From Tubulanus polymorphus (lineage: Eukaryota; Animalia; Nemertea), in the NCBI RefSeq assembly GCF_964204645.1, contig NC_134030.1, positions 22,342,210 to 22,406,209 of the forward strand: a DNA stretch of 64,000 nucleotides, read 5' to 3'. The position numbers were made by a program, and so were the translations under genes. Under the pieces are notes generated by a model. The model did no database searches. It saw only the letters and a list, made by a program, of their open reading frames with translations, and was not told where the DNA came from. How positions within the stretch are numbered: the first letter of the stretch is position 1; the number at the start of each line of letters is the position of its first letter. Shown here one piece after another: positions 12,740-44,188 of the stretch.

Positions 12740-15700
12740 TCAAACAGCACTCCCCTCCTGGCCACTACCATTACCTGCATTAATCCTACTAGACTCGGGG
12801 TTCACTCTTTCGCCCCGCAAATGGTTCATTTCCCCTCCACGACAACCTACAAATAAAAACAAATCATAAAATACAATTGTCCGATTGTGATATAATTGTG
12901 TTTGGATAACTGTCTGCTCTGCTTTGAATATTGCTCTGCTTTTTTTAATAATCTTGCTGTTGTATTATATGAGTACCCTTACAGTTTTCTCTGCTTTAAA
13001 TGACGTGTCAAGTGCGTGTCACGTGTCAAACTGTTTTATGTTGTTTGTATTACATCTGATTACTTAATTTGTCTCTTTGTTCTGGGTCGTAAATACCTCA
13101 CAATTTTTTCATAACACTAGTATTCTTGAAGTTTAGGATAAACTCCAAACGATGAATAAACTATTAGCTCGAGGAATACAATTTTTCTAAAGATGACTAT
13201 TAGGATATAGTTGAAACGTTGAATAAACTACACTAGCTCAAGGAATACAGTATTCCTGAAGATGACTATTAGGATATAGTCGAAACGTTGAATAAACTAC
13301 ACTAGCTCAAGGGATACAGTATTCCTGAAGATGGCTATCAGGATAAAGTCGAAACGTTGAATAAACTACACTAGCTCAAGGAATACAGTATTCCTGTAGA
13401 TGACTATTAGGATATAGTCAAAACGTTGAATAAACTACACTAGCTCAAGGAATACAGTATTCCTGAAGATGACTATTAGGATAAAGTCGACACGTTGAAT
13501 AAACTACACTAGCTCAAGGAATACAGTATTCCTGAAGATGACTATTAGGATATAGTCGAAACGTTGGATAAACTACACTAGCTCAAGGAATACAGTATTC
13601 CTGAAGATGACTATTAGGATATAGTCGACACGTTGAATAAACTACACTAGCTCAGGGAATACAGTATTCCTGAAGATGACTATTAGGATATAGTCGAAAC
13701 GTTGAATAAACTACACTAGCTCAAGGAATACAGTATTCCTGAAGATGACTATTAGGATATAGTCGAAACGTTATTGCCACCATAGACTACCGCCCCCTAG
13801 CTCTTTGGAGACAGGGAACCAGTCTTCAATTCAATTCAGAATTTATTTTACAGAAAAGCGGTTTTTAAGTTTTAGATATTCAAACTGAAAAATATAAATG
13901 TTCATACAGAGATTTTACAAATGGCCGCTAACGCAAGCACCCAATGAAAGTAAAAGAAAATAAAAAGAATTTTTTAAAAACGTGAAAGTAAATATTTTTT
14001 GTGAAATTTTATTTGTGTCAATAAAGAATGAATTGAATTGTCAGCAGCACTATGCCGCGCATGAATACCAATTTCAAGAATGATCACGCACGCTCAACCA
14101 AGGTTGGTATGCGCTGCTAAAATAACAAAAACGATTTAAAAAAATCATAAAACAATGAAAACGACAACCGTAATAGCCAATATACGAAAGCAACCTAGAT
14201 TTTATTACTGCATTAAATGTGTGTAAATATCAGAGCCCAAGAACGTTTCTAACGAAAGTTATAGACTCCCCAAGCAACTTATCAATCCGTGTGATAGCAA
14301 TATGGGCTTGCAAGCATGCAAGCCCATGATAAAATGCGCGCCATTTTGTTTTGGGTTTCACATTAGGCTTTCCCATTGGGCTTTCCCAATGACATCAGAA
14401 ACGCCGAAATTCCCGGAATGTCCTGTATATCCCACAAACAGCCAATCACATTCATTGTAGCTCAGGTTACAAGGTCAACTCAAATAAATAGAAGCGAGGA
14501 AATTTAGGGGGTTTATAAAGTGAGGGCCTGTAGGTCGAAAAGTACATTGAGATCAGTCGAACTAAAAACGGCAACACTTCCAGGAAGGATTGAACTTTTA
14601 TATATTTCAATTCCACGCATGCAAATTGCCATATGTAAAAACGTGCCATTACTTAGTGCTAAAAAGCAGGGTTTCACGTGTTTTTCAAGAATAAGTCCCC
14701 TGAAAATATCTCGATCATGAAATTTTTGTGGCCTCGAGAACTCATTAAGCCAAACCATGACACCAAAAATCAACACTATTGGTTCAACAGCCAGTGTTTA
14801 TGCCTTGTTGACACACCGGTACTCTATTCATTTTCAATGAAAACTGCTTCATCAGACCGTTTGCATATGCTACGGTTCGCCAAAAATGTACAAACGTTTA
14901 TTAATACTCAACCCAACGTTGAATTCAATTTCAAGCACTCTTTCACCATTATCGAGGGTTGACTGTACATGTTTATAGAGGGAGAGTAGATAATTTTGGA
15001 TGGATCCTCTAATCTCTCCAGCCTTTTCATTTTAAGCATTATGTAAATGAATTATTACAGAACTTATAATTTCCACATCTACACGGTTCATCATTAGGTC
15101 AATTGTAAATAACGTAGATTCTGCAGTTGTTTATTACAAGTTTGGCGACAAAAACAGTTAATTTGGCAGGATTAATCATCAATGTTTTCAATGTTAATAC
15201 AACTTACAGCAATTACATGTACACGGCCCACTTCTCAACAGCACTGCAAATAGAAAATAATACAACAGTTTATTCTACAGTTACTGTGAATATTAATCTT
15301 TGTCAATTTCAAAGAAGGTTATTTTATAAAACAGTGACACACTTCGTTATCAGGTTCATCGGCAGCAGGTAATTTGCAAGTCACTAAAAACAAACAAACA
15401 AATTATTCTAATTTGCGATAATCCTTTCTATGATTCTACGATGGTATTTTCCTATGACACTTACAGCAACAACAAACACATAGTTCATTGTCCGACGAGT
15501 TTTCTTGATCATTAGGTTTTCTGCACCGCACTGTCAATTAGAAATAACACAGTATGTTATTTCTGCAGTTTATTAGGGTTTTCAGAAATTAACGATGGTT
15601 TTATGTAAAACTTACAGCAGCCACGACGCCACATTATAAACAGTATTATCGGAATCAGTAATATCAGTATACCGATTACAGCACCAGCCACTATTCCTCC

Positions 15701-18700
15701 ATTCCATCCATCTGGAACTGAAATTCAAACTAATCAGCAATTTTTATTAAATCATATATAAAACCTAGAAATAGTTCCATTGTAACAATTGATTAACATT
15801 GAGTAAGTCCACACCAAAGAAAACCCTGTTTCTCGGGCCTGACCGCCACAGTATTTCGCCAAGTCATCTAGTCATCCAGCCATCCAGTCACCCAATACGG
15901 CCTGAAGTATCTTAGTCAGTAACTTAGTCATCCAGTCACCCAGTCACCCAGTCATCCAGTCCCCCTGTCACCAGGTGCCCAAGTCACCAAGTCCCCCAGT
16001 CATCCAGTCCCCCAGTCACCAAGTCCCCCAGTCACCCAGTCACCCAGTCATCCAGTCACCCAGTCACTCAGTCCCCCAGTCACTCAGTCCCCCAGTCATC
16101 CAGTCCCCCTGACACTCACTCACCCAGTCCCCCAGTCATCCAGTCCCCCTGTCATTCACTCACCCAGTCCCCCAGTCATCCAGTCCCCAGTCACCAAGTC
16201 CCCCAGTCACCAAGTCATCCAGTCCCCCTGTCACCCAGTCACCAAGTCATCCAGTCCCCCAGTCATCCAGTCCCCCTGTCACAAAGTCCCCCAGTCATCC
16301 AGTCACCCAGTCCCCCAGTCACCCAGTCCCCCAGTCACTCAGTCCCCCAGTCATCCAGTCCCCCTGTCACTCACTCATCCAGTCACCCAGTCCCCCTGTC
16401 ACTCACTCACCCAGTCCCCCAGTCACCCAGTCACTCAGTCCCCCAGTCACCCAGTCCCCCAGTCACCCAGTCCCCCAGTCACTCAGTCCCCCAGTCACCC
16501 AGTCACTCAGTCCCCCAGTCACCCAGTCCCCCAGTCACCCAGTCACCCAGTCCCCCAGTCACTCAGTCCCCCAGTCACCCAGTCACCCAGTCACTCAGTC
16601 CCCCAGTCACCCAGTCACTCAGTCCTCCAGTCACCCAGTCCCCCAGTCACCCAGTCACCCAGTCCCCCAGTCACTCAGTCCCCCAGTCACCCAGTCACCC
16701 AGTCACTCAGTCCCCCAGTCACCCAGTCCCCCAGTCACCCAGTCACCCATTCCCCCAGTCACCCAGTCCCCCAGTCACCCAGTCACTCAGTCCCCCAGTC
16801 ACCCAGTCCCCCAGTCACTCAGTCCCCCAGTCCCCCAGTCACTCAGTCCCCCAGTCACCCAGTCACTCAGTCCCCCAGTCACCCAGTCACTCAGTCCCCC
16901 AGTCACCCAGTCCCCCAGTCACTCAGTCCCCCAGTCACCCAGGCCCCCAGTCACTCAGTCCCCCAGTCACCCAGTCACTCAGTCCCCCAGTCCCCCAGTC
17001 ACCCAGTCACCCAGTCCCCCAGTCACTCAGTCCCCCAGTCACCCAGTCCCCCAGTCACCCAGTCACTCAGTCCCCCAGTCACCCAGTCCCCCAGTCACCC
17101 AGTCACCCAGTCACTCAGTCCCCCAGTCACCCAGTCCCCCAGTCACCCAGTCCCCCAGTCACTCAGTCCCCCAGTCACCCAGTCACTCAGTCCCCCAGTC
17201 ACCCAGTCCCCCAGTCACTCAGTCCCCCAGTCACCCAGTCACTCAGTCCCCCAGTCACCCAGTCACTCAGTCCCCCAGTCACCCAGTCCCCCAGTCACTC
17301 AGTCCCCCAGTCACCCAGTCACCCAGTCCCCCAGTCACCCAGTCCCCCAGTCACTCAGTCCCCCAGTCACCCAGTCCCCCAGTCACTCAGTCCCCCAGTC
17401 ACTCAGTCCCCCAGTCACCCAGTCCCCCAGTCACTCAGTCCCCCAGTCACTCAGTCCCCCAGTCACCCAGTCCCCCAGTCACTCAGTCCCCCAGTCACTC
17501 AGTCCCCCAGTCACCCAGTCCCCCAGTCACCCAGTCCCCCAGTCACCCAGTCCCCCAGTCACTCAGTCCCCCAGTCACCCAGTCCCCCAGTCACTCAGTC
17601 CCCCAGTCACTCAGTCCCCCAGTCACCCAGTCCCCCAGTCACCCAGTCCCCCAGTCACTCAGTCCCCCAGTCACCCAGTCCCCCAGTCACCCAGTCCCCC
17701 AGTCACTCAGTCCCCCAGTCACCCAGTCCCCCAGTCACCCAGTCCCCCAGTCACCCAGTCCCCCAGTCACTCAGTCCCCCAGTCACCCAGTCCCCCAGTC
17801 ACTCAGTCCCCCAGTCACTCAGTCCCCCAGTCACCCAGTCCCCCAGTCACCCAGTCCCCCAGTCACTCAGTCCCCCAGTCACCCAGTCCCCCAGTCAATG
17901 AAGTTACAAATTTCAAAATAAGAAAATACAACATACAAGACACATGCGTAATTCACACAGAATAACATAAACATGTAATTTTAAATGACAATGTCTACTT
18001 CAACCCAGACTCAAGAGGATATCGAGTGACAGCCAAACCGAGCAGGAACCCCGGGCCGGCTGACTAGGCCATACAAACGATATGCTCCAAAGTAATTATG
18101 ACGCAGACATCAAAAGAGCTCTTTCTTCAACTATGGAGGCAATGAAGTTGCAGACCAGCTTAGAATGAAGTCGTGAGTGAAGTCGGTCGCAAGTTATCAA
18201 TTATTGACAATTTTCAATAAAGAAATTACATGAAACCACTACTAGAGTCGAAGACCTGTATCATCTACCCAATCGCCAAATCTCATAATTCCCCAAATAT
18301 CTTAAAACTTTGATTTCAAATTTGCAATTCCACATTAGCTTATCCCAAAAATTCTACATTTTTTCGCAGGCGCCAAATAATTTATTAAAATTGATTTTCT
18401 TGTTGGAAACAAAGTTGGAAACATGAGTAACAAAGCAAAGCTTATTTTGCGGGCAAATTTCCGCTAGAAGTGTGGCAGGATTTAGCAACTAGATTATTAT
18501 TGAAACATGTCAAAGAAAGCCAGGTGTCATATATTGATAAACTAATGATGTATTCATAATTCAGTAATAGTTATAGAAAAATACTGTTGCTAAAGTAGTT
18601 ATCTTCATTACCTTGAGCAGGATCCACTGTATCATTAGCAGCAGGATTTTCGGGGAAAGAAGTGACTGAAAACAAACAAAATAGATTGATATGGTATTTT

Positions 18701-21700
18701 ATTTTGCTCTGATGGTCTTTTTCTCTATGGAAACTTAAGCAGTAATAAACACATATTGACCTCGATGCAGCAATTACAACTTAACAGTTTATCACCCAAT
18801 CACCCAATACGCCCTGCCACTCAGTCCCCCAGTCATCCAGTCCCCCAGTCATCAAATCATCCAGTCATCAAGTCGCCCAGTCACCCAATACACCCTGTCA
18901 CTCAGTCCCCCAGTCTCCCAGTCACCCAGCCACCCAGTCGTTCAGTCCCCCAGTCATCCAGTCCCCCTGTCACTCAGTCCCCCAGTCATCAAGTCGCCCA
19001 GTCACCCAATACACCCTGCCACCCAGTCCCCCAGTCACCCAGTCCTCCAGTCTCCCAGTCACCCAGCCACCCAGTCGTTCAGTCCCCCAGTCATCCAGTC
19101 CCCCAGTCACCCAGTCATCAAGTCGCCAGGTCACCCAATACACCCTGTCACTCAGTCCCCCAGTCACCCAGTCATCAAGTCGCCCAATCACCCAATACAC
19201 CCTGCGACCCAGTCCCTCAGTCCCCCAGTCATCAAGTCACCCAATCACCCAATACACCCTGTCACTCAGTCCCCCAGTCACCCAGTCATCAAGTCGCCCA
19301 ATCACCCAATACACCCTGCCACCCAGTCCCCCAGTCACCCAGTCATCAAGTCGCCCAGTCACCCAATACACCCTGCGACCTAGTCCCTCAGTCCCCCAGT
19401 CATCAAGTCGCCCAATCACCCAATACACCCTGTCACTCAGTCCCCCAGTCATCCAGTCATCAAGTCGCCCAGTCACCCAATACACCCTGCGACCCAGTCC
19501 CTCAGTCCCCCAGTCATCAAGTCGCCCAATCACCCAATACACCCTGTCACTCAGTCCCCCAGTCATCCAGTCATCAAGTCGCCCAGTCACCCAATACACC
19601 CTGCCACCCAGTCCCCCAGTCACCGAGTCCCCAAGTCATCCAGTCACCCAGTCGTTCAGTCCCCCAGTCATCCAGTCCCCCTGTCACTCAGTCCCCCAGT
19701 CACTCAGTCCCCCAATCACCCAGCGTGAGAGTCAATTTGAGTTTCTGTAAATATATTCTAGGAGTTAACAAATTTACATCTAATGCTGCTGTTATCGGTG
19801 AACTAGGCATACCCTGTATTAATAAAAGCTCTTGTACATAGTAGTAAATGTTGGTTTAACTGTTGTGAATCTAGCACATCTACATTAGTGAGACAGGTAA
19901 ATATAGAATGCTTATCATTGATGCACCAACAAACATGAATGCTGAGGAGGCCTCTAAATTTCTGTGAATAGACGTTCATAACATTGTTCCTAAATAACTC
20001 TCGTCGCTTATCGCATCCCGCCATTATTTTTCATTCCTCCCTCTCCCTCCCCTATCTCCTCCCCCTCCCCCTCTCTCCCTACCCCTCTCCCCCCTAAAAT
20101 ATTCCTAAAATTGGTCGGGTCTGGTGTATGAACCAATTAAGTTGATTGACATGCTAGTTCTTTGCTGTAACTCCAGTAAATATATTATTTTTGTCCTCTT
20201 AAATTTTATCGTGCGTTTTATATCGTATTTTTAATTCTTGTGGATTTTATTCTCTGAATTTCTTTTTTATTTTTTTCTCTGTTCCTAAATTGCTTTTTGT
20301 GTAAAACTTTCCTAAGTTGCAATAAAGAATGAATTGAGTTGAAATCATCCAGTCATCCAGCTACCCAGTCACACAGTCACCCAGTCATCTAGTCACCCAG
20401 TCATCCAGTTACCCAGGAAGAAAGACACTCTAAATATTTGGATGGATATATGAAAGCTGTGGGTACTGGAGTGTGTAATGGGTAGTGTAGTGTGATCTGT
20501 GTGCATTTGTGGCCAGCACACAGATCACATTGTTCAATGGGGTTTGGTCCAGGTCTCGCGAGATTTTCAACAACACGGAAGTAACGTGTAATAAATGATG
20601 ACTTGAATTGCATGACTACCTACCACCCCTCATTATTGTTGGAAAACTAAACGTTCGGCACTGACTAAAAATTAGTAATAACATTTTAGAAATGGCCAGA
20701 ATTTTAACATAGGTTCTATCTCATTTTTATTTTACAATTGCGATTGGTATAATTTTTTTTTAAACGGCCGTTAAGGCTTCATGTTTCGTCTGCAATTCAC
20801 TGTAAATAGTTACGCAACTACGCACATTTCAGTGTTTTTGGCAGCTGTACACTCAATCGGCACCGTTCGTGACTAGCTTCACTGCGGAATTATCATTAAT
20901 TAACATCGCCATATCACATCATCAGCTTATATTGTGCCTTAAAACCCTAACAGCCGAAATAATTGAAATGCACACACGATTTCTATCATTGAAAATTGAG
21001 AGAATGGCCGTGTTTTTGTTCTGCTGCTTCGCGTAAATCCCGCGCGGCCGCGCGGAGTGGGGCCGATACGTCCAGTTTTTATCGGTTGTTTTCCTTTTAC
21101 GTAATCTATTCCATAAATACATTTTATCTTACATGTTATATCATTCTTTCTTGTAGAGTAGTTTCTATTATCCGCCAATCAATATTAGTCACCTTAATAT
21201 AACAAACCTCATTTAGGATGATGCGATCTTGGAGTAATCATTTGTCAAATGATTACTCCAAGACGCGATACAGCTTCTGCATTAAACTTGATTGTCAGCA
21301 GTAGAATTGCCAACCAGATCCAGATCTTCAACACATTAACGTGTTACGACCTTGAAATACGACCTTGTTGGAGTGGGGCCGATACGTCCAGTCACCCAGT
21401 CATACATTCACCCGGTCATCCAGTCGCCTATTCACCTAGTCCCCCAGTCACCCAGTCCCCCAGTTATCCAGTCACCCAGTCCCCCAGTTATCCAGCCACC
21501 CAGTCACACAGTCCCCCAGTCACCCGGTAACTCAGTCCCCCAGTCGCCCAGTCACCCAGTCCCCCGTTCGCCCAGTCACCCAATACACCCAGCCACCAAT
21601 CCCCCAGTCACCCAATACACCAAGCCACCAATCCCCCAGTCACCCAATACACCCAGCCACCAATCCCCCAGTCACCCAATACACCCAGCCACCAATCCCC

Positions 21701-24700
21701 CAGTCACCCAATACACCCAGCCACCAATCCCCCAGTCACCCAATACACCCAGACCCCCAGTAACTCAGTTCCCCCAGTCACCCAGTTCCCCCAGTCACCC
21801 AGTCCCCAAGTCATCCAGCTACCCAGTCATCCAGTCACCCAGTCCCCCAGTCACCCAGTCCCCCAGTCACCCAGTCATCCAGTCCCCCAGTAACTCAGTC
21901 CCCCCAGTCACCTAGTCCCCCAGTCACCCAGTCCCCCAGTTATCCAGTCCATCCTCCGTTCGCCCAGTCACCCAACACACCCAGCCACCAATCCCCCAGT
22001 CACCCAATACACCCAGCCACCAATCCCCCAGTCACCCAATACACCCAGCCACCAATCCCCCAGTCACCCAATACACTCAGTCCCCCAGTAACTCAGTCAT
22101 CCAGTCCCCCAGTCATCCAGTTCCCCAGTAACTCAGTCCCCCCAGTCACCTAGTCCCCCAGTCACCCAGTCCCCCAGTTATCCAGTCCATCCTCCGTTCG
22201 CCCAGTCACCCAACACACCCAGCCACCAATCCCCCAGTCACCCACTCAGTCCCCCAGTAACTCAGTCATCCAGTCCCCCAGTCATCCAGTCCCCCAGTAA
22301 CTCAGTCCCCCCAGTCACCTAGTCCCCCAGTCACCCAGACCCCCAGTTATCCAGTCCTCCGTTCGCCCAGTCACCCAATACACCCAGCCACCAATCCCCC
22401 AGTCACCCAATACACCCAGCCACCAATCCCCCAGTCACCCAATACACCCAGCCACCAATCCCCCAGTCACCCAATACACCCAGCCACCAATCCCCCAGTC
22501 ACCCAATACACCCAGCCACCAATCCCCCAGTCACCCAATACACTCAGTCCCCCAGTAACTCAGTCATCCAGTCCCCCAGTCATCCAGTCCCCCAGTAACT
22601 CAGTCCCCCCAGTCACCTAGTCCCCCAGTCACCCAGTCCCCCAGTTATCCAGTCCTCCGTTCGCCCAGTCACCCAATACACCCAGCCACCAATCCCCCAG
22701 TCACCCAATACACCCAGCCACCAATCCCCCAGTCACCCAATACACTCAGTCCCCCAGTAACTCAGTCATCCAGTCCCCCAGTCATCCAGTCCCCCAGTAA
22801 CTCAGTCCCCCCAGTCACCTAGTCCCCCAGTCACCCAGTCCCCCAGTTATCCAGTCCTCCGTTCGCCCAGTCACCCAATACACCCAGCCACCAATCCCCC
22901 AGTCACCCAATACACCCAGCCACCAATCCCCCAGTCACCCAATACACTCAGTCCCCCAGTAACTCAGTCATCCAGTCCCCCAGTCATCCAGTCCCCCAGT
23001 AACTCAGTCCCCCCAGTCACCTAGTCCCCCAGTCACCCAGTCCCCCAGTTATCCAGTCCTCCGTTCGCCCAGTCATCCAATACACCCAGCCACCAATCCC
23101 CCAGTCATCCAATACACTCAGTCCCCCAGTAACTCAGTCATCCAGTCCCCCAGTCATCCAGTCCCCCAGTAACTCAGTCCCCCCAGTCACCTAGTCCCCG
23201 AGTCACCCAGTCCCCCAGTTATCCAGTCCTTCGTTCGCCCAGTCACCCAATACACCCAGCCACCAATCCCCCAGTCATCCAATACACCCAGCCACCAATC
23301 CCCCAGTCACCCAATACACCCAGCCACCAATCCCCAGGTCACCCAATACACCCAGCCACCAATCCCCCAGTCACCCAATACACCCAGCCACCAATCCCCC
23401 AGTCACCCAATACACCCAGCCACCAATCCCCCAGTCACCCAATACACCCAGCCACCAATCCTCCAGTCATTCAATACACCCAGCCACCAATCCCCCAGTC
23501 ACCCAATACACCCAGCCACCAATCCCCCAGTCACCCAATACACCCAGCCACCAATCCTCCAGTCATTCAATACACCCAGCCACCAATCCTCCAGTCATTC
23601 AATACACCCTTGCACCCCGTTTTCATAGTTTCCAAACTACAAGAAGTATGAGAAGTACAAATTGAATTGCAGATACAAATTGAACTCAAAATGAAGATGT
23701 GACGATTTATTATGGTGAATCAAATAAGTTTGAATTTAATTCATCTGCTTAAGAGATGAATGCCTTGAGTTAATTTAGTTGTACGGAATAAAATCATCTG
23801 TTCAAATTCAGATAAGAAATTCATCTATTTGTGATCCGCAATCTCACCTGGTTCATCAGTTGGACCGGCGTTATGATAACCAGCGACATCAATGACCCTT
23901 TCATTAATACCATCAGCCAAACACCGCCCTCTATAGTCAGTTGTGGTACTGTTTACGATAGGTATCGTTATATTCCACTGAGAGTTTGATAGTTTTTGAA
24001 CGACAGCTGGAGGGTCACATGTAACTTGTTGAGTCAATGGGTTACTATTAACTGTTACATTATACGCTGCGTGTGTTTTATTTTCACTGGATTTCTTGTA
24101 AACTGGTGCAGCAAAATCTGATTGAAAAAAAAATTTGTGTGAAGGTTGTTTACAAACATGCTGCCCTGGCATAGTTCTGAAAACCTGTCATAGTAGACCC
24201 ATATCATCTTTCGGCTGGGATTCGAAATAGTGACATTGTTTAGGGTGGATCGGTCTACTATGACAGGGATTACCTACTACCGGGTTAGGAAACTGTTATT
24301 CTTAAGGCTGGCTTATGTCGACAAGCAACGCCTACCAACGCAACTGGGTTTATCGCAATGACCGGCTAGCTATGTTCTACTCCGGCCAACGGTAGGCGGG
24401 CAGTTGCTTTCGATCGCAGCCGACATAAGCTTATCTGCGACGCGACGGAACTGAGCGCAGGGGTTCCAGCCAATGAGAGACCGCATATACATAGTACAAA
24501 TGACCGCTAGTTAGCGTCATTCGTAATTAGTCATAAACTTTCAAATTAAAGTAGTTCAAACCGTAAACCAAACCTTCAGCACGGCAGAGGACTGGACCGA
24601 AGATCTAGAAACGAAATTGGTGTGAATTATTGTGTGAGCGGCCATCTTTATAGATGTCGCTAGCTCATTGTATTCAAAACAGAATAAGAAATATAAAGTT

Positions 24701-27700
24701 CTTAAAAGAAATAGCTTTTCTAATAGAAATATATTTCCTAATAATTCAAATTTATTTTCAAAATGCTTATCACGTGACCATTTGAGCCGTTGCAGTTGCT
24801 AGTAATCGCAACCGACATAAGCAGGGAAGCAACTAGGAGGATCTCATATCCCGCTAGTCGGCCTCAGTTGCTGCGAATCGGAGCGCAGTCGACATAAGCT
24901 GGGCTGCGATCGCGGTTGCTCTCAGTTGCGTCGGTAGGCGTCGCGTTGCCTGTCGACATAAGCCAGCCTTTAGGATGATTTCTCAAATACAACAAATAAA
25001 TCTGTTTAAATCTTTATTGTAAGAAATATTTCTCGAATTCGAAAAAGAAACTGTTACTTACAATGAACAATGATTGGATTAAATTGCTGAGGTTCTGGAA
25101 ACGTAAGGTTCTCCTTTACAGCACATCGAAATGACGTTCCATTGTGACGTGTGAAATCAGCTTTGAACTTGTACGTCGTGTCAAAACCCCCCAAGACAGA
25201 TACTCTTTGAGGTTGTGGATCAGGAATTGGCTGCCATTGTTCTGAACCTCTTCTCTTCTGTTGGTATATCACTGTAGGATCGGGCCTTCCACCTTCTGTT
25301 CTACAAGTATATTCTACATTTTCTCCTTCAGTTCTAATGTCAGGTTGTCCGGTGAGATTACCTTGTGTTTGAATTTTATCAGGAAAATCTGAAAGATAAA
25401 AATGTAAATATATTTTTTGGCTACCATTCATTATATGATTATTTCATTTCTTTACGCTTATCAATTTATTATTGTTGCTACTGTGAGAAAATATTCATCC
25501 ATTAAATATAGAAATGTCACTTGAGGTGGCGGGTGTGGTACTTCCCAGAGGTTCAATTAATGTTTAAAAATGCTTAGAAAAACAACAGTTCCTTTTTTAG
25601 ATATCATACTATAGTTTTGTATCATTTGTAACATTTGTAACCAATGAAGAGGGGTATATGTTAACCCGAAAACGTTTAATGACTTATTCAACATGATTCA
25701 TTTATATGAAAAATAAAACTGTTTGTTCTTCTATGGATATTTTAATTATTTGAACACTCTACCGAGCATATATCACTAATGTTTATATATCAGGGATCGT
25801 ATGGGTAATCTAAATCAATAACTTTTAACCGAAAAAGTTTATATTTTTATTTACATTTTGACATTTTAGTTCCAATCCATGTGGACTCAAAATGTATAAA
25901 ACCTTCATATTACAAGGCGTCCCATGTACAAAACTTTTAAGTATAATAAGGTTGAATTTCCAAAAGTAAATACCCGCACTAATACTCATTTCTAGGACAG
26001 TCCCGGACACCCAGCAAAAGTGTTAACTCATACCAGACTTCAGTCTGACATGATATGAAAATAATTTCACTGTTTTTTAACTTACACGTAACATCCATTT
26101 CCATTTGATGTAGTATTTCATTGTGTAGTTTTTTACCACTGTAGTGCGTCAAGTGACATTGAGTCGATGTTGCATGCATTACGTATCTGTGATCGGTCTG
26201 AAGCCTGCTGATAACTCCACCATCGTTCAGCGAAGTATTTACGCCATAATCAATAGGGGAGAAATCTTTTTCGCCTTCAGTATATCCATCAGCATACCAT
26301 TTTACAGTTATGTTTATATTACCGATCTTACTAGTGGCTTTACAAGTACAAGCTAGTGATGGTTTGAATTCATGCAGTTTACACGGATTTTCATTTATCT
26401 TTATACCTATAACAGATTTACATGAAAACATTTACAATTTCAATTTGCTAGAGTCCGTGAAACTGGCAAACACAAACGATTAGATCGGTTTCGGACGATC
26501 TGTTTGTTTTTCAAAAGGACTCTTAAGCTAGGGGTGACAATAGAGTGGTGTACACAGTTGAAATTGATCGATATTTTATAAAAATTCGGATGTTGCAAAT
26601 AGTAATTCAAACATGGCCGACGGTGCAATTTGCAATCCATAGAGCTCTGCAATGCAAAATTTATTGTCGACTAAAACTGCGCTGAAGTAATTTCTGTACC
26701 AGTCACGAGATGAATCTTTCAGAATGATGTTTGGCTAAATGTTTAGCAGATCGTTTTGGATGTAGATACTGAAATTCGATGTTATAAACCTCATATATAC
26801 TCATAGCTTTAAGGATGTGGATATCTTAATATGGATAGAAACTGCTTTAAGTTTCTGTGAACCGTGTGTATGAATAGAGTAGATAAACATAAATCTGGAA
26901 TTCAACTGAAATAAGCTGGTCTCGAACGATTGAACCGGTTATATTGGGGTGATAAATTAGTTGTTTAGATAACGGAAAAGGAAGCCAGAGTTAACAAGCA
27001 AGCTACGTGAATGCTTACGTCACACATTACATATAGAAACGAAGATAGATGAAAGTGACGTTAGGATCTAAGTGGGGAAGCTTGATATAGCAGCAGCCTT
27101 GAGCTCTGGTAAGTTCAAGTATTAAATTTAGCACTAGTGACATACGAAGAAACGTTTTACATAGCTCGGTGGAATGTTGTGACGTGATACTACGTCACAG
27201 GCTATAGCCGCGATCACGCGGAGACGATTTGGCCCGGGCCAACTTGGCACGGATTAGGCTCGGCCAAATTTGGCCCGTTTCTAATTAATGAGCACGCTCA
27301 CACGCAAACCATTCATTCTATACTAAACAATGCTCAAACAAAGCGAAGTGGATCATTTTCGGTGCTAGTTGCAATTCAAACGCAATCATTTGTCTGGCGC
27401 TAAAATTTGGCTTGGGCCTGGACCGACATTTTGGTCGGGCCAAAAATGCTCATGCGATGGCAGCTAATGATGCCGGGCTGTGTAGACGTATACGTCACGA
27501 GAAAGATAATGCAGTAAACTTGGGGTCCAGGGAAACCATGCCCACTAGGGAAGTGGTTCCAAAAGCTCAACATTCTAACAATTTCAATATTCAACGCCCC
27601 CTGGTGACCATATACAGAATCCAATGACCTTGAAACTCACCACAATCATAGAACATGTCACGAACTATAACTTTGTAATTGATCATGGTAACAAAATATG

Positions 27701-30700
27701 CCTAGGAACCAATATAATAAGGAAATATTAAGTTATTCTACTATTCAACGCCCCCTGGTGGCCATATACAAAATCCAATGACCTTGAAACTCACCACAAT
27801 CATAGAACACGTTATGAGCTACAACTTTCTAATTGATTGTGGTAAGAAAATATGCTTAGGTATCAATATAATGTGGAAAAGTTTTTTCCCACTTATGAAT
27901 GAGTACTGCTGACACCAAGATGGCCGCCAATTGCGTCATAATTGGCTGATGAGAAATACCTATCTCAGTTATAAAACGTCCCTTTCCAAAGAATACCCAT
28001 CACAAATTGCAATGAGAAATGGTAAACCATTAGGAAGCTACAGGACTCAGAATTCGGGCCAAAATCAACATTTTTGGGCACTAAAAGGATGGCCATCTTG
28101 ATTCCGATCGACCCAATTTTTGTTACGCTGATGGACGCCGGGGGGATTCACATATATCCGAAAGATCAAGGTAATTGATCAAAGCGTCTTCAAAATTTCC
28201 CTCTAAAAGTTCAAAAATGTGTAAAAAGTGCTGATTTTGGCGAACAACAATGGCTGCCAGTCGGCCATCTTGATTCTGACAGGGCCAGTTTTTGGGCTGA
28301 AGATGTGTCTAGGGTAGATACATGTGTAACCCAAATATCAAGACATTACCTTGAAGCGTCTTCAAAACTTCCCAAAATATCTGGATTCCGTCTACGGACG
28401 GACGACGGACGAAAAGTGAACGCAATAGCCCACTGGGACTTAAGTCCCTAGTGGGCTAAAAAGGGAGGGTTTCAGTACAGTAGGGTGGTTGAGCTAGAGA
28501 GTTAAAGGGTTGAAGATTATGAAAGAACTTGAATGAACATTTTAAGAAGGTATTGGAATAAATGCTGGAACCATAGAACGCACGTCCGATACAACGACCA
28601 GGTGACAATAATCATCAATGTTTGGCTTTCGAAATAAACATTCAACTGACATGGCTTTAACTTCTATGAGCGATGATATTTCACAAAATCTAGAAGCACA
28701 GACGTTTAGAAAGAACCGCCCATACTTACTGATTACATCTGATTGGTAGATTTGACTTTCACTCGGTCCGGCTGAATTGATGGCTACACATTTATACTGT
28801 TTACCAGCCTCAGGTACAATTATCCACAATGTTGATATACACTCTGGTTCCTGTTTAGATGAGGGAAGAGATAATGGAGTCCAGGTCCCTCCTGTTCCAC
28901 TGTTCACGTGCAGCTGGAATTCTACACCAGTCGCTGCATTGTTGCTCTGTTTACAGGTAATATTAACAGTTTTACCTTCTTGCGATAGTAATACACGTGT
29001 ACCCGGTAGTACATTGTCACTGTCAAGTACAACTCCATCAGGTGCTGAAATATCAAATACACAATATACGTAATATTCTTGTACCCGGTAATACATTCAC
29101 ACTGTCCAGCACAACTACATCAGGTGCTGAAATATCAAATACACAATATACGTAATATTCTTGTACCCGGTAATACATTCACACTGTCCAGCACAACTCC
29201 ATCAGGTGCTGAAATATCAAATACACAATATACGTAATATTCTTGTACCCGGTAATACATTCACACTGTCCAGTACAACTCCATCAGGTGCTGAAATATC
29301 AAATACACAATATACGTAATATTCTTGTACCCGGTAATACATTGACACTGTCCAGTACAACTCCATCAGGCGCTGAAATATCAAATACACAATATACGTA
29401 ATATTCTTGTACCCGGTAATACATTCACACTGTCCAGTACAACTCCATCAGGCGCTGAAATATCAAATACACAATATACGTAATATTCTTGTACCCGGTA
29501 ATACATTCACACTGTCCAGTACAACTCCATCAGGTGCTGAAATATCAAATACACAATATACGTAATATTCTTGTACCCGGTAATACATTCACACTGTCCA
29601 GTACAACTCCATCAGGTGCTGAAATATCAAATACACAATATACGTAATATTCTTGTACCCGGTAATACATTCACGCTGTCCAGTACAACTCCATCAGGTG
29701 CTGAAATATCAAATACACAATATACGTAATAATCTTGTACCCGGTAATACATTCACACTGTCCAGTACAACTCCATCAGGTGCTGAAAAAGATACGTCAC
29801 TTTTAGGAAGGCGCCTCGAAATCTTCAAAATTTTAAAGATTTTTTTGGATTGAAATCATCATTTTTGTCTGGTAAAGGATGACCTTATTTTCATTTCGTA
29901 CGTATGGCACTGCTGATTCGCAAGAAAAACCAGTGACTTTTGTCGATGACAACACAACTTGCGATATGTCTGTGTCTTGGAATCAGTATAAAGGATTGAA
30001 CTACTAACAACGTATTCTCAGCTCATAGTGGGACACTGGATGCTGGTTTAAAGTTTTGCGATGAAATTATACCCAGTTCCGACGACTTAGCAGACTTTAT
30101 GGAGAATATCGATTAAAAATGTGGCTGGTGAAAGGATCAACAAGGATAGTTGTTTTGCTTTATAGAAGAATTAGTTAAATCATGGATAAAATTAGTATAA
30201 CGGTTTATAGAATGATTTTAGGATTGATGATTAATCACAATGTAGTTCCGAATTGAAAGTATTTGTACCGTAATTTGTGATGAATTCAAACTTTTGGAAA
30301 TATATTTAATTTAAGTAATCTGGTCCCACTCCGCACGGATGCGCCACCGAGCGGGATTTACGCAAAGCAGCAGAAACAAATATGGCCACCTTTTGAAATT
30401 TCAATGTTAGAAATTGTACAAGAATTTCGATTATTTCAGCTGTTAGGGTTTCAAGGCACAATATAACTAGATGATGTGATATGGCGATGTTAATTAATGA
30501 TAATTCCGCAATGAAGCTAGTCACGAACGGTGCCGATTAAGTGTACAGCGATCAAAAACATGAATTTGCGTAGTTACGTAACTATTTGCCGTAAAGTACA
30601 GACGAAACATGAAGCCTTAATGGCCGTTTACAAAAACATTCTTGCAATCACAATTGAAATATAATAATGATATACAACTTAAGATAAAATTATGGCCTTT

Positions 30701-31639
30701 CTAAAATTATAGCAAAAATATATTATAATTTGTAGTCAGTGCGGAACGTTTGGTTTCGGAACAATAAATGAGGGGTAGACACAATCGACACGTGTGTACT
30801 ACACTCGCTGTATCGACGTTCGCGGCTCTCAACCTAAACAAAACCGGCACCCGACCGGAACCCGCCAACCTGGCCACCTTTTCTACGATTTTACATCTAT
30901 ATGATTAAATCAATTTCCGACAACGTTTTCGCATTTTTTATTCGTGTATCTAGTGTTTCAACGTGTTTATCAGTATACCGGGGGACCCGTGGTTAGGATG
31001 GATCTTTGAATATATATCCCGGCTGTGAGATAAGATTCTTAAATTGATGAAAGTAAACATTCAATGTGAGTTGATATTTGGATAGCATTTTACGCATGTC
31101 TGAAGATATAATAATACAATAATTGAATATTCAAAATGAGTCACTTTTTAGGTGAAATTTTAGTTACATCATTCCAACTGTTATCAGTTGAACCACTATC
31201 ATTTTGTCCCAGATATTTGTGTTACAAGTCTGGTGATAAGTTTTATCGTATGTAATAATACATTTTTGATAAATAGACCCTCATACTAACATAGTACCCA
31301 AGTTTCACCATGATCGACCCACGGCTGAAAAAACCAGACACTCACACAGACAGACTGATAGGTTTCACATAGACAATTTGATGTTATATGTTTATTATAA
31401 TATATTTCTGATCATTTTGTCCCAGATTTGTAAAACAAGTTTCCAAGTGTGATGAATGATACTAATGATAGTAATAAAGTCTGAAATATTTATGCAATAT
31501 TATTTTTCGTGGGTTTTTTCACTGGTGTCGTTGTCTTACGGGTATTGACTCTAAACGCTTGTGGATTGTTGTGCGGGATTAGAATCAACAGTATGATCAT
31601 CACTAAACACTGCTGCAGATTCCTCGACTGATTCCTCAT
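12740..31639 (-). CDS. Gene A: four-Ig-like-domain type-I membrane protein with Cys-rich juxtamembrane tail and C-terminal PDZ-binding-type motif (about 565 aa)
   Basis: Exons: 31540-31639 (leader MRNQSRNLQQCLVMIILLILIPHNNPQAFRVNT), 28730-29044 (D1), 26086-26406 (D2, C...KW...C), 25062-25388 (D3), 23848-24117 (D4), 18612-18665 (stalk), 15616-15717 (TM GGIVAGAVIGILILLIPIILFIMWRR), 15465-15530, optional 15333-15383, 15208-15243, 12740-12846 (ends EGSAV-stop). All junctions are phase 1 with GT-AG. The leader and terminal exon assignments are less certain than D1 to TM. Confidence 0.75.
13113..13772 (+). ncRNA. Tandem array (about 10 x 69 bp) of minimal type-I hammerhead ribozyme motifs
   Basis: Each unit contains TATTC-CTGAAGA-T-GACTAT-taggat-ATAGTC-GAAA-CG-TT-GAATA, i.e. 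stem I, CUGANGA core, stem II, GAAA, palindromic ACGT mini stem III, UH site. Cores are intact in units starting near 13251, 13320, 13527 and 13665 (13734 has the core but lacks the 3-prime stem I strand). Other units carry core mutations. Confidence 0.8.
15860..17897. repeat. 9-bp minisatellite (CCAGTCACC / CCAGTCCCC / TCAGTCCCC variants), about 2 kb, in a gene A intron
   Basis: Direct inspection. Confidence 0.97.
18792..19722. repeat. Same 9-bp family organised into 57-bp higher-order units
   Basis: 19-aa periodicity (QSPSHQVAQSPNTPCHSVP) in the spurious ORF 18756-19841. Confidence 0.93.
19728..19980 (+). mobile_element. LINE ORF2 relic (segment C-terminal to the RT domain)
   Basis: LSFCKYILGVNKFTSNAAVIGELG matches the post-RT motif FCK.ILGV...T.N..V.GELG of non-LTR retrotransposons. 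Disrupted downstream. Confidence 0.65.
20413..21359. repeat. About 950-bp segmental duplication, copy 2, embedded in the intronic minisatellite of gene A
   Basis: Matches 3353-4298 with only scattered substitutions. Confidence 0.95.
21388..23609. repeat. Same 9-bp family with 32-bp derived units and longer higher-order blocks
   Basis: Unit acccagccaccaatcccccagtcacccaatac interleaved with cagtccccc runs. Confidence 0.95.
24305..24969. mobile_element. PIF/Harbinger-type MITE
   Basis: TIR aggctggcttatgtcgaca(a/g)gcaacgc at both ends; TTA target-site duplication on both sides. Confidence 0.88.
27520..28462 (+). mobile_element. Helentron/HINE-like non-autonomous rolling-circle element
   Basis: 5-prime subterminal gcccactaggga is complementary to part of the 3-prime hairpin tagcccactgggacttaagtccctagtgggcta, which is followed by an A-tract. 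Internal about 155-bp direct repeats (27588, 27743) and a ggacggac microsatellite precede the hairpin. The 5-prime boundary is approximate. Confidence 0.6.
28999..29790. repeat. 82-bp tandem repeat spanning the intron/exon boundary of gene A D1 exon (10 acceptor copies)
   Basis: Same unit as 2557-3110. Acceptor positions run from 29045 to 29783 in steps of 82. Confidence 0.95.
30322..30777 (-). repeat. Diverged inverted copy of an about 440-bp dispersed element also at about 3565-4003 and 20625-21064
   Basis: Reverse-complement matches, e.g. gatgtgatatggcgatgttaattaatgataattccgca and gaagctagtcacgaacggtgccgat. Confidence 0.8.
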
Positions 31640-38949: not shown

Positions 38950-41900
38950 TTATGTATGAGTGGTGTCTTTCTTCGAACTTGCCGCCTTCCCGGCTTCCAT
39001 ATCGATGCCACGAGTTGTATCTTTGCCCTTTCCGGCTTCCATATCCATATAAGGAGTTGTATCCTTGCCCTTTCCGGCTTTCATATCCATATAAGGAGTT
39101 GTATCTTTTCCCTTTCCAGCTTCCATATCCATATAAGGAGTTGTATCCTTGCCCTTTCCGGCTTCCATGTCCATAAAAGGAGTTGTATCTTTTCCCTTTC
39201 CGGCTTTCATATCCATATAAGGAGTTGTATCTTTTCCCTTTCCAGCTTCCATATCCATATAAGGAGTTGTATCCTTGCCCTTTCCGGCTTCCATATCTAT
39301 ATAAGGAGTTGTATTCTTGCCCTTTCCGGCTTCCATATCCATATAAGGAGTTGTATCCTTGCCCTTTCCGGCTTCCATATCTATATAAGGAGTTGTATCC
39401 TTGTATATTCCGGCTTTCATATCCATATAAGGAGTTGTATCTTTGCCCTTTCCGGCTTCCATATCCGTGTGAGTTTTATCTTTGCCTATAATCGCGCTTT
39501 CCGTGCTCATGTACGTATCCTCGTCTATACCGGGTCCCATATCCATATAAGGAGCTTTACATTCAACAGTAGCATACGAATAAAGTTGATCATCATCTTC
39601 TACATATGCATCGGTATCTGCCACCAACTGAAGATACGTCCTCTTCAAAGCTTCAGGATTCATGTACTGATCTGTATCTGAGTCTCCCACAGCGCCAGTA
39701 GTTGTCACGTCTATCGCGCCTTCAGTACTCCTGTACGTGTCCTCTTCTATTCCAGGTCCCATATCCATATAAGGAGTTGTATCGTTGCCTATTGCACCTT
39801 CAGTACTTCTATATGTTTCTTCGTCTATATCAATGTAAGAAGCCATATATTTGCTCCTCCCGGCTTCCATATCTATGTAAGGAGTTGTATCTTTGCCCTT
39901 TTCGGCTCTCATGGCTTTATGAGTTTGTATGTTATGTTGTAGTAATCCAGTTTCAGTATTTCTCACAGGTTTTCGGTTTAGAACATTGTCGGGATTTCTG
40001 CAATCATCCGGATCTTCGTAGATGTACAATTCTTCATTTCTTGATTCAAGCTGTAGAGGTCGAGTTGAAGTCTCCACATGACCTTCATCGGGCGAACGAC
40101 GTCTGCATCTGAAAGTTGTAATGCAGCATAGGAATTTTTGTCAAAGATGCAATCTATCGTCTATGGTGGTTGATTCGGGCCATGCTAAAAACATTTTCTG
40201 TAGAAACGTAGAAAAATTTTCACATCGGCCCGTTTTTTGGTTTTCTCGCGCGAAAATTCAAAACATTTGGTTTTCTCGCGCGAGAATTCAAAACATTTGG
40301 TTTCAGTTCACAGTTCGAACTGTTTTACGGTCGACTTCATACCTGCGAATGATGACAATGATGCGAATGATGCCAACAGTGATGAGAACGATCAAAATGA
40401 ATCCAGTCGCTCCGCAGGAGAAGTAGAGAATGGTCCGATCAGTTATGGTCTGGTCAGTTGTGGTCTGGTCAGTCGTGGATCGGTCTTTAGTGGTCCGCTG
40501 ATTGGGGTCTTTTGTAGTCTGAAAGTTGTAAGAATAATGAAAAGGCTATCATGAAACACCGTTAAATTAGATTTTTTAGTGACCGTTTATTCGAAAAGAA
40601 ACTGACATTTGCCATCAAAAATAATCAATCTATTATCATATCGATTATGAACCCATCTCCACAGTTGTGTTGGTTAAATTTGACTCTAAATCCAGTTCTA
40701 CAGCTGTGGTAGTTTAATTTGACTGTGGATCCAGTTCCACAGTTGTGTGGGCTTAATTTGACTAAGGCTTGAAAGGCAGCAGATACTCACCTTCGGTAGA
40801 TCAGTAGTTGAATGACCTGAAACAAAAAATGACTAACCGAGTGAGAAAAATCATCTCATGCATAAAGCCTGGTTCCCGAGTGTAGTGGGAAAGCGTTCGT
40901 GAAAACGCTGAAAAATTGGACCCGATCTGCTGGAAAAGGCAACTCGCACGATCATGAAAATGTTATCCGCAGTAGTTTCCAGCCTTGCCACAAAGCGCTC
41001 GTGAAAACGGAGTCCATTTTCAGCTATTGCTGAGATAGAAAAACTTTATCGTTGAAAATGGTTTTAATTACTTTTTTTTCATTTCTCTAGTACTTTCTGT
41101 TAACCTTTTGTATTCCTCGTGGTAATTATTATTTAGGGCTTTCTGACCACCGTCAGGAAAATGAAAGAAAACGATGGTAAACCAAATCCGGTCATCAAGA
41201 AATCATCAAGAATCCGTCCACTGCTGGCCATTTGATGAGCTAGCCAGCGCGTTCGCAAATTCTACTAAACGAACCTCTGTACAATGCGCGAAACCATCAC
41301 CAACAACTTCTAAGAATGAACCGGAAGCGAGAAATTGGAGTCTTATCAGAATCCGGTTTGAAACACGACTATAGGTTCTTGATGAATTCCAGATCATGCC
41401 GACTAAATCTGAATCTCTGCCGCTATTGGTCATCAGTGAATTCGTCGAAATTATGTCTAAAATGTCTTTCGTTTTGAAAATTTGGAAAAATACGTCGTCC
41501 GCCATTTTGTTGATTTAAAATGAGATAAACAACTTTGGACCGTTTAACTATAACGGTCGTTTAAGCGATTTAACCGACCGTTACATCTTTGAGCAACCGC
41601 AAATAACGACAGTTTAATTTTTTGACGCCTTATAAAACGTTACCATTATGAAACCTAAACATTGTTAACCATTCAGCGTCATTTCACAATCGACAACCGT
41701 TAATCGAAACGTCACAGGTCTATGTGTACACATACAAGCTATTTGGCAAAATATTATTGACAAAGATGTAGAATGGCTCCCTGTGATTATACAATGACCT
41801 CTATTTGAACGTCGAAATGTTATATTGCATTGAATATCATTAGAAGACGTATTGTAATAGTAAAGGATGAAGTAAATTGGATTATTCGGTTAAATGACCG

Positions 41901-44188
41901 ATGTATACACGGTGCGGAAGTCTGATATAAAAGTAAGAACCTAAATGGAGATGCTGGTGGAATGACGAAGCTATCTACGATCTGTGTAGGGCCGGCGTGA
42001 ATTTCATCGGCGGCTACAAGTGGTCAATATAAAAACGTGTAAATATTTAATTTCAATATTCAAATGTTTAAGAAAATATGTTCGATATTCGGGGTATCCA
42101 GGTTTCATGAGATTAGCAATTTATAATAGCATAGCTGCCATATACGGCTCCGCGTCCTCTGATGGCATGTGTTATTAGGTGACAATTCAATTCTTTATTG
42201 ATCCTTATTACATATAAAATTCCAAAATTCATTAAAGTTACAAATTTTAAAATAAGAAAATACAACATACGAAACGCATGCGTAATTCATACAGAATAAC
42301 ATAAACAAGTTTTTTTTTAAATGACATTGTCTACTTGAACCCAAGTAATAGGGATAATAGGGGTTCAAGCCAAAGGTCGAACGGTCGAACGGTCGAAAAA
42401 TGAAAAAATAAATTCTCGCACACTCGAATTTATTTTTCATTTTTTACTCACTCACCCCTTCAACCTTTAACCTGAACCCCTATCATCCCTATTACTCTTA
42501 AAATATTCATATATATGTATAACATATAAATGAATAATTTCTAAAATCAATTTTAATAAAAAATTTGATATTAAAATGGAAGCAAATAAGTACTACTGTC
42601 CAACATGTAAAATCAATATAGATATATCCCAAAAAGCAAGACACAATAAAACTAGAACACATTTAGATAGACATAGTTGTGAATATTTATATTTATATGT
42701 GTTAAATTCTTATTTTCAATATAAAAAGTAACGAGTAATTAACGAGTGAAATAATTCATATTTAAAACAGTGAATATTTATATTTATATGCGTTAAATTC
42801 TTATTTTATGTTTAAAAGTAACGAGTAATTAACGAGTTGATGAAAATATCAATTTTAATAACAAAATTACTTATAAATATGAATGAACAGATACTACATT
42901 TCAAAGATATCGATTTAAATGAATTAGAAAAATATTTTACAATTAAAAATTTCATTCCTATTAAAGATTTGATTAAAACTGCGCGTCTTCGTTTTCAAGT
43001 GAAAAATATTACTGAATTAGTGTTTAAAAATCATTATCTAATAATAGAGTTATCGAATGATAAAGATAAAATCTTATTCAATACAATAATTCCAAAATTC
43101 ACAACATTTGATGGAATAGATAAACATTTAATAATTACAGATGAAATGCAATCACTTTTTAATGATGAAAGTACATTATTAAATCATAAAACATTATTTT
43201 TACACTTACGTTATTGCCCATTCAGAGAATGCTATGTTATGTTTTTCAGATTACAAGAAAAGAGATTCATCCCCGACATTCCAAATGAAAAATCATTTAA
43301 AGACATTAGTATTCAATGTGATTTAGATAATGAAAAATCATATAAAGATGTTGGGATTCAATGTAACTTAGACAATAAAATTGATAAAACACCAGATATT
43401 AGACATTTTATCAGCGCACTTTCAACAACTGATCGTCCACACTTCACATGTGTTCAGTTCGTCATCTAAGACAGTTTTTATTGAAAATGAACTTAACAAA
43501 CACCAGACATTAGATATTTATCAGCATACTATCAAAAACTGATCTTCCATGCCTCACAAGTGTTCACTTGAGACATTTTTATTTGAAAATGAACTACAAA
43601 CACCAGACACCTGATGATAAACACACGATTAATTATAATTTTTCTCGCTTTTTAGGAAGAAATAAACTATTACTTACCGGTATTATGAAATACAATCATA
43701 TCAAACTGAATCGGTTTCGGATTTTTAGGGTTATCCTTTGCAAGACATCTAAATGATGATCCATCGTGAAGTTTGAAATCAGCTTTGAATTTTAGCTCAG
43801 CTTCAGCGAGTCTATTCGCGTTCCTTCTTTGTATATGACCACGAACCGGACCCCATGATTCAGAACCTCGACTCTTCTGTTGAAATATCAACGTACGCTT
43901 TGACCCTTCAAACGGTAGTATGCATTTATAAACTATCTCGTCTCCTTGGGTTTTCCTGTCAGGCCGACCTGCTGGGACTGGGTAAGGTCTAATCAGGAAA
44001 TCGCCTGAAACGAATGGATGTCAAGTGTCACGATTGCAAGCGCAAACAATATGAAAAAAATTCATTCTTGATGATTTCAGTAACTTACCCCCATCTCTCC
44101 TCATTCGAGACAATTCTGTACTGTGTATGTTTCCCAGTTGTAGTAAAACTACGACGCACATTAGTACGAAACAGTTCTTCAACATCAT
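38950..44188 (-). CDS. Gene B: single-Ig type-I transmembrane receptor with a tandem YxxM cytoplasmic tail (595 aa)
   Basis: Exons: 44089-44188 (MMLKNCFVLMCVVVLLQLGNIHSTELSRMRRDG, signal peptide plus RMRR), 43678-44004 (Ig: EIVYKC...FKADFKLHDGSSFRC), 40791-40816, 40343-40518 (Thr-rich stalk and TM ILYFSCGATGFILIVLITVGII), 38950-40108 (cytoplasmic tail). GT-AG introns, phases 1,1,0,2 join without stops, total 1788 nt. Confidence 0.85.
38985..39490 (-). repeat. 42-bp coding minisatellite encoding (E/K)AGKGKDTTPY(M/I)DM
   Basis: About 12 near-identical 42-bp units, in frame within the last exon of gene B. Confidence 0.95.
41206..41505 (-). mobile_element. Harbinger (HARBI1-like) transposase N-terminal relic in a gene B intron
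   Basis: ILIRLQFLASGSFLEVVGDGF resembles the L.F.A(T/S)GSF..V.GD helix-turn-helix motif of Harbinger transposases. Internally deleted. Confidence 0.6.
42345..42495. repeat. Inverted repeat / small MITE
   Basis: gtaatagggataataggggttca / tgaacccctatcatccctattac. Confidence 0.65.
42576..43469 (+). mobile_element. AT-rich intronless two-ORF insert (Maverick/Polinton- or DNA-virus-like relic) in a gene B intron
   Basis: ORF1 42576-42731 MEANKYYCPTCKINIDISQKARHNKTRTH (C2H2-type finger). ORF2 about 42879-43469 with a duplicated K(S)(F/Y)KD(I/V)(S/G)IQC motif. Both are preceded by the same aaaat(a)tcaattttaataa motif. Confidence 0.45.

Follow-up and report, generated by a model that had tools for sequence, protein, structure and literature searches.

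A minisatellite-built array of PI3K-type tyrosine motifs in the tail of an immunoglobulin receptor family from the ribbon worm Tubulanus polymorphus

LOC141907468 of the palaeonemertean ribbon worm Tubulanus polymorphus, located in the 64,000-nucleotide stretch analysed here (hereafter the window), encodes a single-pass receptor with one immunoglobulin (Ig) domain and a long cytoplasmic tail, and the tyrosine motif that is repeated in this tail is under selection. We lean slightly towards the interpretation that the product is a kinase-less type I co-receptor of immune type with a single Ig domain, which would dock PI3K via its tail array and is usually encoded beside a partner Ig receptor. 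LOC141907468 and its relatives apparently form an undescribed family of tyrosine-motif Ig receptors in which a selected PI3K-type motif has been multiplied by a coding minisatellite; no paper on the family, the species or invertebrate YxxM arrays was found in a literature search that covered subscription journals thinly. Tyrosine-motif Ig receptor clusters have been described in a cnidarian and a tunicate, where they rely on ITAM/ITIM. If our interpretation is true, the nemertean cluster with its PI3K-type motifs would have originated independently of both and would deliver a different output. The family is also a natural allelic series, with nearly the same 14-residue unit in 1-19 copies and some units carrying Asn (Grb2-type) or Phe (dead), and it suits testing how the number of pYxxM maps to PI3K output. 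Should the number prove irrelevant, the case would still show coding minisatellites building signalling tails.

Gene structure and the immunoglobulin ectodomain

The gene model comprises five exons (Table 1) separated by introns that are all GT-AG and whose phases match (1/1/0/2), and the spliced exons sum to 1788 nt, i.e., 595 aa and a stop codon. The model was searched exon by exon, and the last exon alone as query retrieved LOC141907468 with 100% identity over the query; the RefSeq protein (P0001) equals the model in length (595 aa) and in tail sequence. The segment encoded by exon 4 contains 22 uncharged residues, followed by Arg and then by a basic stop-transfer cluster, with a hydropathy of 3.0 at residue 190. 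Signal peptide, one transmembrane (TM) helix, basic cytoplasmic flank and in-frame splicing are those of a type I single-pass receptor. A preliminary description made from the sequence had proposed a correctly phased leader-Ig-stalk-TM gene with a cytoplasmic tail, which is borne out by the phases, the RefSeq identity and the TM helix with its basic flank. The 375-aa open reading frame on which that description was built does correspond to the last exon; however, the exon really encodes 385 aa after the phase-2 junction, the reading frame having begun at an internal GTG. A charged TM residue for pairing with an adaptor is not favoured, because the Arg comes after the 22 uncharged residues and is replaced by Cys in close paralogues.

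Table 1. Features of LOC141907468 and its downstream neighbour, in window positions
Feature	Position	Strand	Evidence
Exon 1: signal peptide, then basic RMRR stretch; phase-1 donor	44089..44188	-	Leaders of paralogues 96-97% identical in DNA
Exon 2: single Ig-fold domain, C2/CD80-like neighbours, invariant Cys/Trp/Cys	43678..44004	-	Alignment, structure model
Exon 3: 26-nt stalk mini-exon	40791..40816	-	Spliced contig 13 (run X2) accommodates it exactly
Exon 4: Thr-rich stalk (15-nt repeat) and TM helix	40343..40518	-	5' junction spliced in reads
Exon 5: cytoplasmic tail, 385 aa, 25 Tyr, 12 YxxM	38950..40108	-	Partly covered by X2 contigs without mismatches
Membrane-proximal acidic tyrosine motif YIYEDP	40009..40026	-	Y then E/D in 22/23 paralogue tails
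Middle module: YMDM, YMNP, YLQL, YSYATV	39538..39801	-	Block-duplicated in some paralogues
42-nt (14-aa) coding minisatellite: 9 YxxM units, 1 Y-to-F, 2 decayed edges (HTDM, GIDM)	38985..39501	-	TRF, translation
LOC141907063, downstream neighbour: four-domain Ig-type receptor	12743..31639	-	Third domain homologous to exon 2

Two public runs from one study, neither of them labelled, cover the stretch, and the analysis refers to one genome. Contigs of run X1 cross introns, and this run looks like DNA. In run X2, a contig of 372 nt joins the end of the Ig exon to the start of the TM exon with no mismatches, and the arithmetic with the mini-exon placed between them is exact (216+26+130 = 372 nt); other contigs of X2 match parts of the tail and of the region past the stop exactly. 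Among the junctions proposed beforehand, 43678/40816 and 40791/40518 are thus spliced in the contig, whereas 44089/44004 and 40343/40108 are not seen in reads, as the leader and TM-to-tail junctions fall into holes in the cover (40285-40388, and the leader and the start of the tail in X2), where the absence of reads proves nothing. These two junctions are supported by the RefSeq model and by 15 paralogue models, in which they are the same.

Exon 2 on its own had no Pfam match; the homologous domain in the neighbouring gene passes the Pfam C2-set_2 cut-off, and C27, W50 and C86 are invariant in an alignment of 11 family domains. The structure model of exon 2 has a pLDDT of 90, and its top structural matches are all Ig domains, the best being Rst D2 (Z 10.9, rmsd 2.4, 96 residues aligned), which shares its rank with SYG-2, a VNAR and MuSK, CD79b and CD22 scoring only slightly lower. 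We regard the predicted immunoglobulin superfamily fold as settled; the fold says nothing on role. A word search with the Ig exon returned nothing useful. When 1.84 billion proteins were searched with a profile, all full-length matches that were looked up came from Tubulanus, and the others were partial matches in multi-Ig proteins; at the sensitivity of this search, the family appears to be species-restricted. Pairwise dN/dS of the Ig exon is elevated (0.5-0.75) and does not exceed 1 overall. Positive selection on this exon is not shown by these values, with one pair at 1.08.

The cytoplasmic tail and selection on its repeat unit

All YxxM motifs of the tail are of the form Y[MI]DM, and there are 12 of them, whereas 5000 shufflings of the tail residues produced 1.9 on average and never more than 9. 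Tandem Repeats Finder delimits the 42-nt array at 38985-39466 (11.5 copies, 90% matches), which includes a recent duplication of three units. The counts given in the preliminary description (12 motifs, nine of them in the 14-aa tandem unit, one Y-to-F unit and the HTDM and GIDM edges) all agree with the translation, and the additional tyrosines it listed (YEDP, YMNP, YLQL and YATV) are present. Comparison of the middle module with true module copies gave dN/dS of 0.28-0.66, and the membrane-proximal YIYEDP is a candidate priming site for a Src-type kinase. The tail, which ends at the stop at 38950, has neither a kinase nor any Pfam domain, which separates the protein from receptor tyrosine kinases, and an atlas search with the tail gave nothing useful. 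By consensus, no ITAM, ITIM or ITSM was found in the tail of LOC141907468, and no ITAM in any of 23 family tails.

For the analysis of selection, units were gathered on the basis of their similarity at codons other than Tyr and Met+3, and 22 loci yielded 97 distinct coding units. Tree-based counts over these units revealed no stop changes and an omega of 0.54 allowing for transitions, i.e., moderate purifying selection. Tyr is the most conserved codon, with 6 events versus 22.7 expected (P 4e-5), followed by Asp+2 (8 versus 22.7) and Met+3 (14 versus 27, P 0.005), these event counts being drawn from a noisy 42-column tree and the Phe-bearing units of one paralogue (L032), whose inclusion would add a Tyr loss, lying beyond the distance cut-off. 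Conservation of Tyr and Met+3 beyond neutral expectation, which had been put forward as a check, is therefore observed among the paralogue units for both residues and for Asp+2 as well. The tyrosine motif is under selection, and the tail of LOC141907468 thus has the conserved cytoplasmic YxxM of a YxxM co-receptor. Met+3 is retained in 85 of the 97 distinct units, and residues other than Met or Ile are rare at position +1. Most frequent among the changes are Met+1 to Ile, after which the unit still has a YxxM, and Asp+2 to Asn, by which the CD28-type YMNM arises. Because the linker residues Lys4, Lys6, Asp7 and Thr8 are almost as conserved as Met+3, conservation does not single out p85.

Three other readings of the repeat were rejected. 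That the motifs are a chance reading of a non-coding satellite is contradicted by the restriction of the unit to family tails (the unit DNA core occurs 100 times in the genome, every time in a family tail, versus 0 for the control) and by the tail frame being the only one without stop changes, since stop-creating changes are present in the other two frames. A neuropeptide-like precursor, considered in view of the Gly-Lys repeats, does not fit a repeat that sits after the TM helix and is without dibasic sites. A Thr-Pro phospho-switch before the Tyr found no support, as that Thr is not conserved (ratio 0.83).

Gene family, paralogues and partner genes

The tail exon matches about 35 loci, most of them on C6 at 17.5-22.8 Mb and a few on C9, C11 and C19. 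In the 23 tails that were read, there are 1-19 YxxM (median 3); six paralogues keep a single YxxM, and LOC141907468 ranks second highest. The large arrays expanded separately, in three independent expansions: diagnostic silent sites distinguish LOC141907468 from L031, and in L032 the amplified unit is a dimer of 32 aa. Two paralogues that are 97% identical differ by exactly 84 nt, i.e., two units, which implies that the number changes fast. A young family with fast turnover in Tubulanus is the best explanation of these data.

Several paralogues deserve mention in their own right. The largest array seen is that of L031 (L031:5953-7056, plus strand, C6 at approximately 22.814 Mb), a nearly pure 42-nt array with 19 YxxM, which makes it a cleaner test case than LOC141907468. 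The tail of L032 (L032:6354-8399, plus strand) is approximately 665 aa long and alternates units of 14 and 18 aa, which form a dimer; there are 19 units with Tyr (many YMNV or YMNM, 13 YxN) and 15 with Phe. Both YMNM and YINM are present in paralogues, and some paralogues also have matches resembling an ITSM (TxYLQL) or, by consensus, an ITIM (SIYEEL). At C6:21.75-22.09 Mb, a block of approximately 25-45 kb, containing a YxxM-tail gene and, after it, a related Ig exon, occurs ten times in tandem; in the two blocks that were read, the tails are 97.8% identical and have 3 YxxM.

According to RefSeq models mapped exon by exon, the family tail is also joined to two other kinds of ectodomain, one with a PLAT domain and one composed of several domains. 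In L037 (P0012, LOC141907020), the family TM and a YMNM tail stand under a PLAT/LH2 ectodomain (Pfam E 6e-6) with no Ig domain, which suggests that exon shuffling placed the tail exon under an ectodomain of another kind. The multi-domain form defines a clade (L035, L036, L042, L043 and L044; P0008, P0010 and P0011) whose first domain is weakly Ig-like (HH probability 47) and whose tails are truncated after one YxxM, some members having decayed units with stops downstream of the new stop. In LOC141907468 itself, the Ig domain groups with L031-L033 and the tail with L034/L040 (AU 0.06 and 0.02, for groups that were named after seeing the trees); this discordance of the trees is only suggestive, and the gene may be a mosaic of Ig and tail lineages.

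The family is clustered and arranged in gene pairs. There are about 35 tail loci, and on the same strand, 5-15 kb downstream, a related Ig exon accompanies 17 of the 21 genes with a family Ig, in a list that lacks some of the Ig hits on C9 and C19 and in which the partner gene was verified only at LOC141907063. The tail of LOC141907063 is short (<100 aa), Cys-rich and without tyrosine, and we propose this gene as a candidate partner of LOC141907468. Some relatives of the partner gene (P0018, P0022, P0024 and P0025) have tails of 670-1070 aa with few YxxM.

Possible PI3K docking, alternative explanations and known systems

The statement of the preliminary description that pYxxM is a ligand of the SH2 domains of class IA PI3K p85 agrees with the literature, in which YMDM is the p85 ligand of PDGFR-beta (pY740) and is used as a PI3K-activating peptide (PMC11750134; PMC6275495). 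Judging from domain matches, all over curated cut-offs (an SH2-iSH2-SH2 cluster at C2:27.959-27.962 Mb and p85-binding domains on C7), the Tubulanus genome has p85-like and p110-like genes, i.e., predicted class IA PI3K subunits. In the interpretation towards which we lean, a ligand would cluster LOC141907468, perhaps together with the adjacent tyrosine-less LOC141907063, which may be the ligand-binding partner. Clustering would allow a cytoplasmic Src-type kinase to phosphorylate the conserved membrane-proximal acidic tyrosine first and the YMDM/YIDM units next; pairs of pYxxM, whose spacing of 14 residues is near that in PDGFR-beta (11), could then hold both SH2 domains of a p85-type subunit and switch on class IA PI3K. 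The YMNM/YxN variants of paralogues would add Grb2.

Docking of PI3K leaves room for different views of array length. We consider it unlikely that a portable tail exon with 1-19 PI3K docks, whose number is set by the minisatellite, varies between alleles and paralogues and is selected, sets the activation threshold of each pair in a spiralian system of paired-receptor recognition, with PI3K in place of the ITAM/ITIM balance known from Botryllus, Hydractinia and vertebrates. Logan contigs break inside the array and cannot span it, so that differences in unit number are those seen between paralogues only. The data so far do not support the proposal of the preliminary description that signal strength could be tuned by copy number between alleles. 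Another view, to which we assign a chance only a little short of even, is that the ancestral 1-4 motifs are PI3K docks and that the long arrays arose by neutral run-out of a minisatellite within a disordered tail, where number above a few is without effect. It is compatible with PI3K docking and is directed at the tuning claim alone. Neutral run-out agrees with the median of three motifs per tail and the six tails with one, with the dimer of L032, in which 15 Phe units were amplified along with 19 Tyr units, with the F, H and G losses in the array of LOC141907468 and with a genome full of tandem arrays. However, the largest arrays (19 in L031 and 12 in LOC141907468) hold the frame and the motif in nearly all units, and the three expansions are independent. 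The Phe amplification in L032, the six single-YxxM paralogues and the dead units of LOC141907468 imply that array length may be largely drift, and the exact copy number is probably set mostly by unequal crossing-over and loosely by selection.

A different use of the motif was also considered. The units might be YxxPhi sorting signals that bind AP-2/AP-1 when unphosphorylated, making the protein a fast-cycling capture or endocytic receptor in which PI3K docking is secondary or a switch; this appears quite unlikely to us, even though unphosphorylated YxxM is a known adaptor-binding signal that binds AP-2 in CTLA-4 (YVKM, PMC4255484). Paralogue variants such as YMNV, YMNI and YMNL retain YxxPhi and lose YxxM, but retention of Met+3 in the great majority of units, with Met/Ile at +1, corresponds to the preference of p85. 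One or two signals are, moreover, normally enough for sorting. It is very unlikely that the tail damps signalling, either by soaking up p85, for which competition at YxxM sites has been discussed (PMC6275495), or by recruiting an SHP/SHIP-type phosphatase through YLQL/YSYATV. The ITSM-like and ITIM-like matches would be in line with such a scaffold in several paralogues; LOC141907468, however, has neither motif by consensus, and membrane-bound pYxxM arrays normally activate PI3K (as in ErbB3). The same PI3K docking could instead serve adhesion, gamete recognition or neural wiring, which has a low probability in our view: the adhesion domains of Rst and SYG-2 are among the best structural neighbours of the Ig domain, but their Z-scores are tied with those of CD22, CD79b and VNAR, and species-restricted expansion, gene pairs and Ig dN/dS of 0.5-0.75 are typical of immune receptor clusters. 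By analogy, the clusters, gene pairs, birth and death and exon mosaics would fit immune or self/non-self recognition, as expected for a co-receptor of immune type.

In genomic layout, the family comes closest to the fester family/fester co-receptor (FF/FcoR) pairs of Botryllus schlosseri and to Hydractinia Alr. FF/FcoR are likewise clustered invertebrate type I receptors of the immunoglobulin superfamily in adjacent gene pairs, one partner having tyrosine motifs, and their copy number changes by pairs (PMC12582321). FcoR tails contain ITIM, hemITAM and core motifs, YxNM being stated as not found (PMC12582321), whereas Tubulanus tails are dominated by YxxM multiplied by a coding minisatellite. 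The Tubulanus family and FF/FcoR showed no sequence homology, and convergence appears to be the best reading of their resemblance. Alr shares a large cluster, single-pass proteins, divergent Ig domains that are barely seen by Pfam, one domain per exon and tyrosine-motif tails (10.1101/2022.03.04.482883). Its tails have ITAM and ITIM, with YxxM unmentioned (10.1101/2022.03.04.482883), in contrast to LOC141907468, in which both are lacking.

With CD28, ICOS, CTLA-4 and DAP10, LOC141907468 shares a single Ig domain, one TM helix, the absence of a kinase and YxxM for p85. In those proteins, the Ig domain is a V-set and the short tail contains a single YxxM, whereas LOC141907468 has 12 in 385 aa, and there is no homology. 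Descent from the CD28 family is not indicated either, as the alignment contains no proline-rich ligand loop and the full-length profile matches that were looked up are all from Tubulanus. ErbB3/HER3, a pseudokinase with an EGFR ectodomain, and IRS, a soluble protein with PH-PTB domains, resemble LOC141907468 in having many YxxM in a long unstructured tail. Their motifs, six in ErbB3 (PMC10875826), are dispersed and are not tandem DNA repeats, unlike those of LOC141907468. It is therefore already known that a kinase-poor receptor may carry its own multivalent dock, and the repeat-built version with up to 19 sites is what departs from this design. Repeated tyrosine motifs phosphorylated by Src-type kinases are also known from the substrate domain of p130Cas and the EPIYA motifs of Helicobacter CagA, and in CagA the repeat number changes SH2 binding; the motifs and partners (Crk, SHP2) are different, and neither protein is an Ig receptor.

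The Tubulanus genome is rich in tandem arrays, and the window holds several others. Rfam at the gathering threshold gave no match in the window. Two neighbouring receptor genes have a common 82-nt tandem unit at the 5' end of their first Ig exon (28998-29788 and 2557-3104), and each unit repeats the start of its own exon. A 69-nt tandem array is located in the last intron of the longer isoform of LOC141907063 (13133-13772). A common short repeat family with 20-47-nt units occurs just past the mini-exon and upstream of LOC141907468 (40658-40763 and 52403-53572), and it is very deep in both runs, suggesting that it is widespread in the genome.
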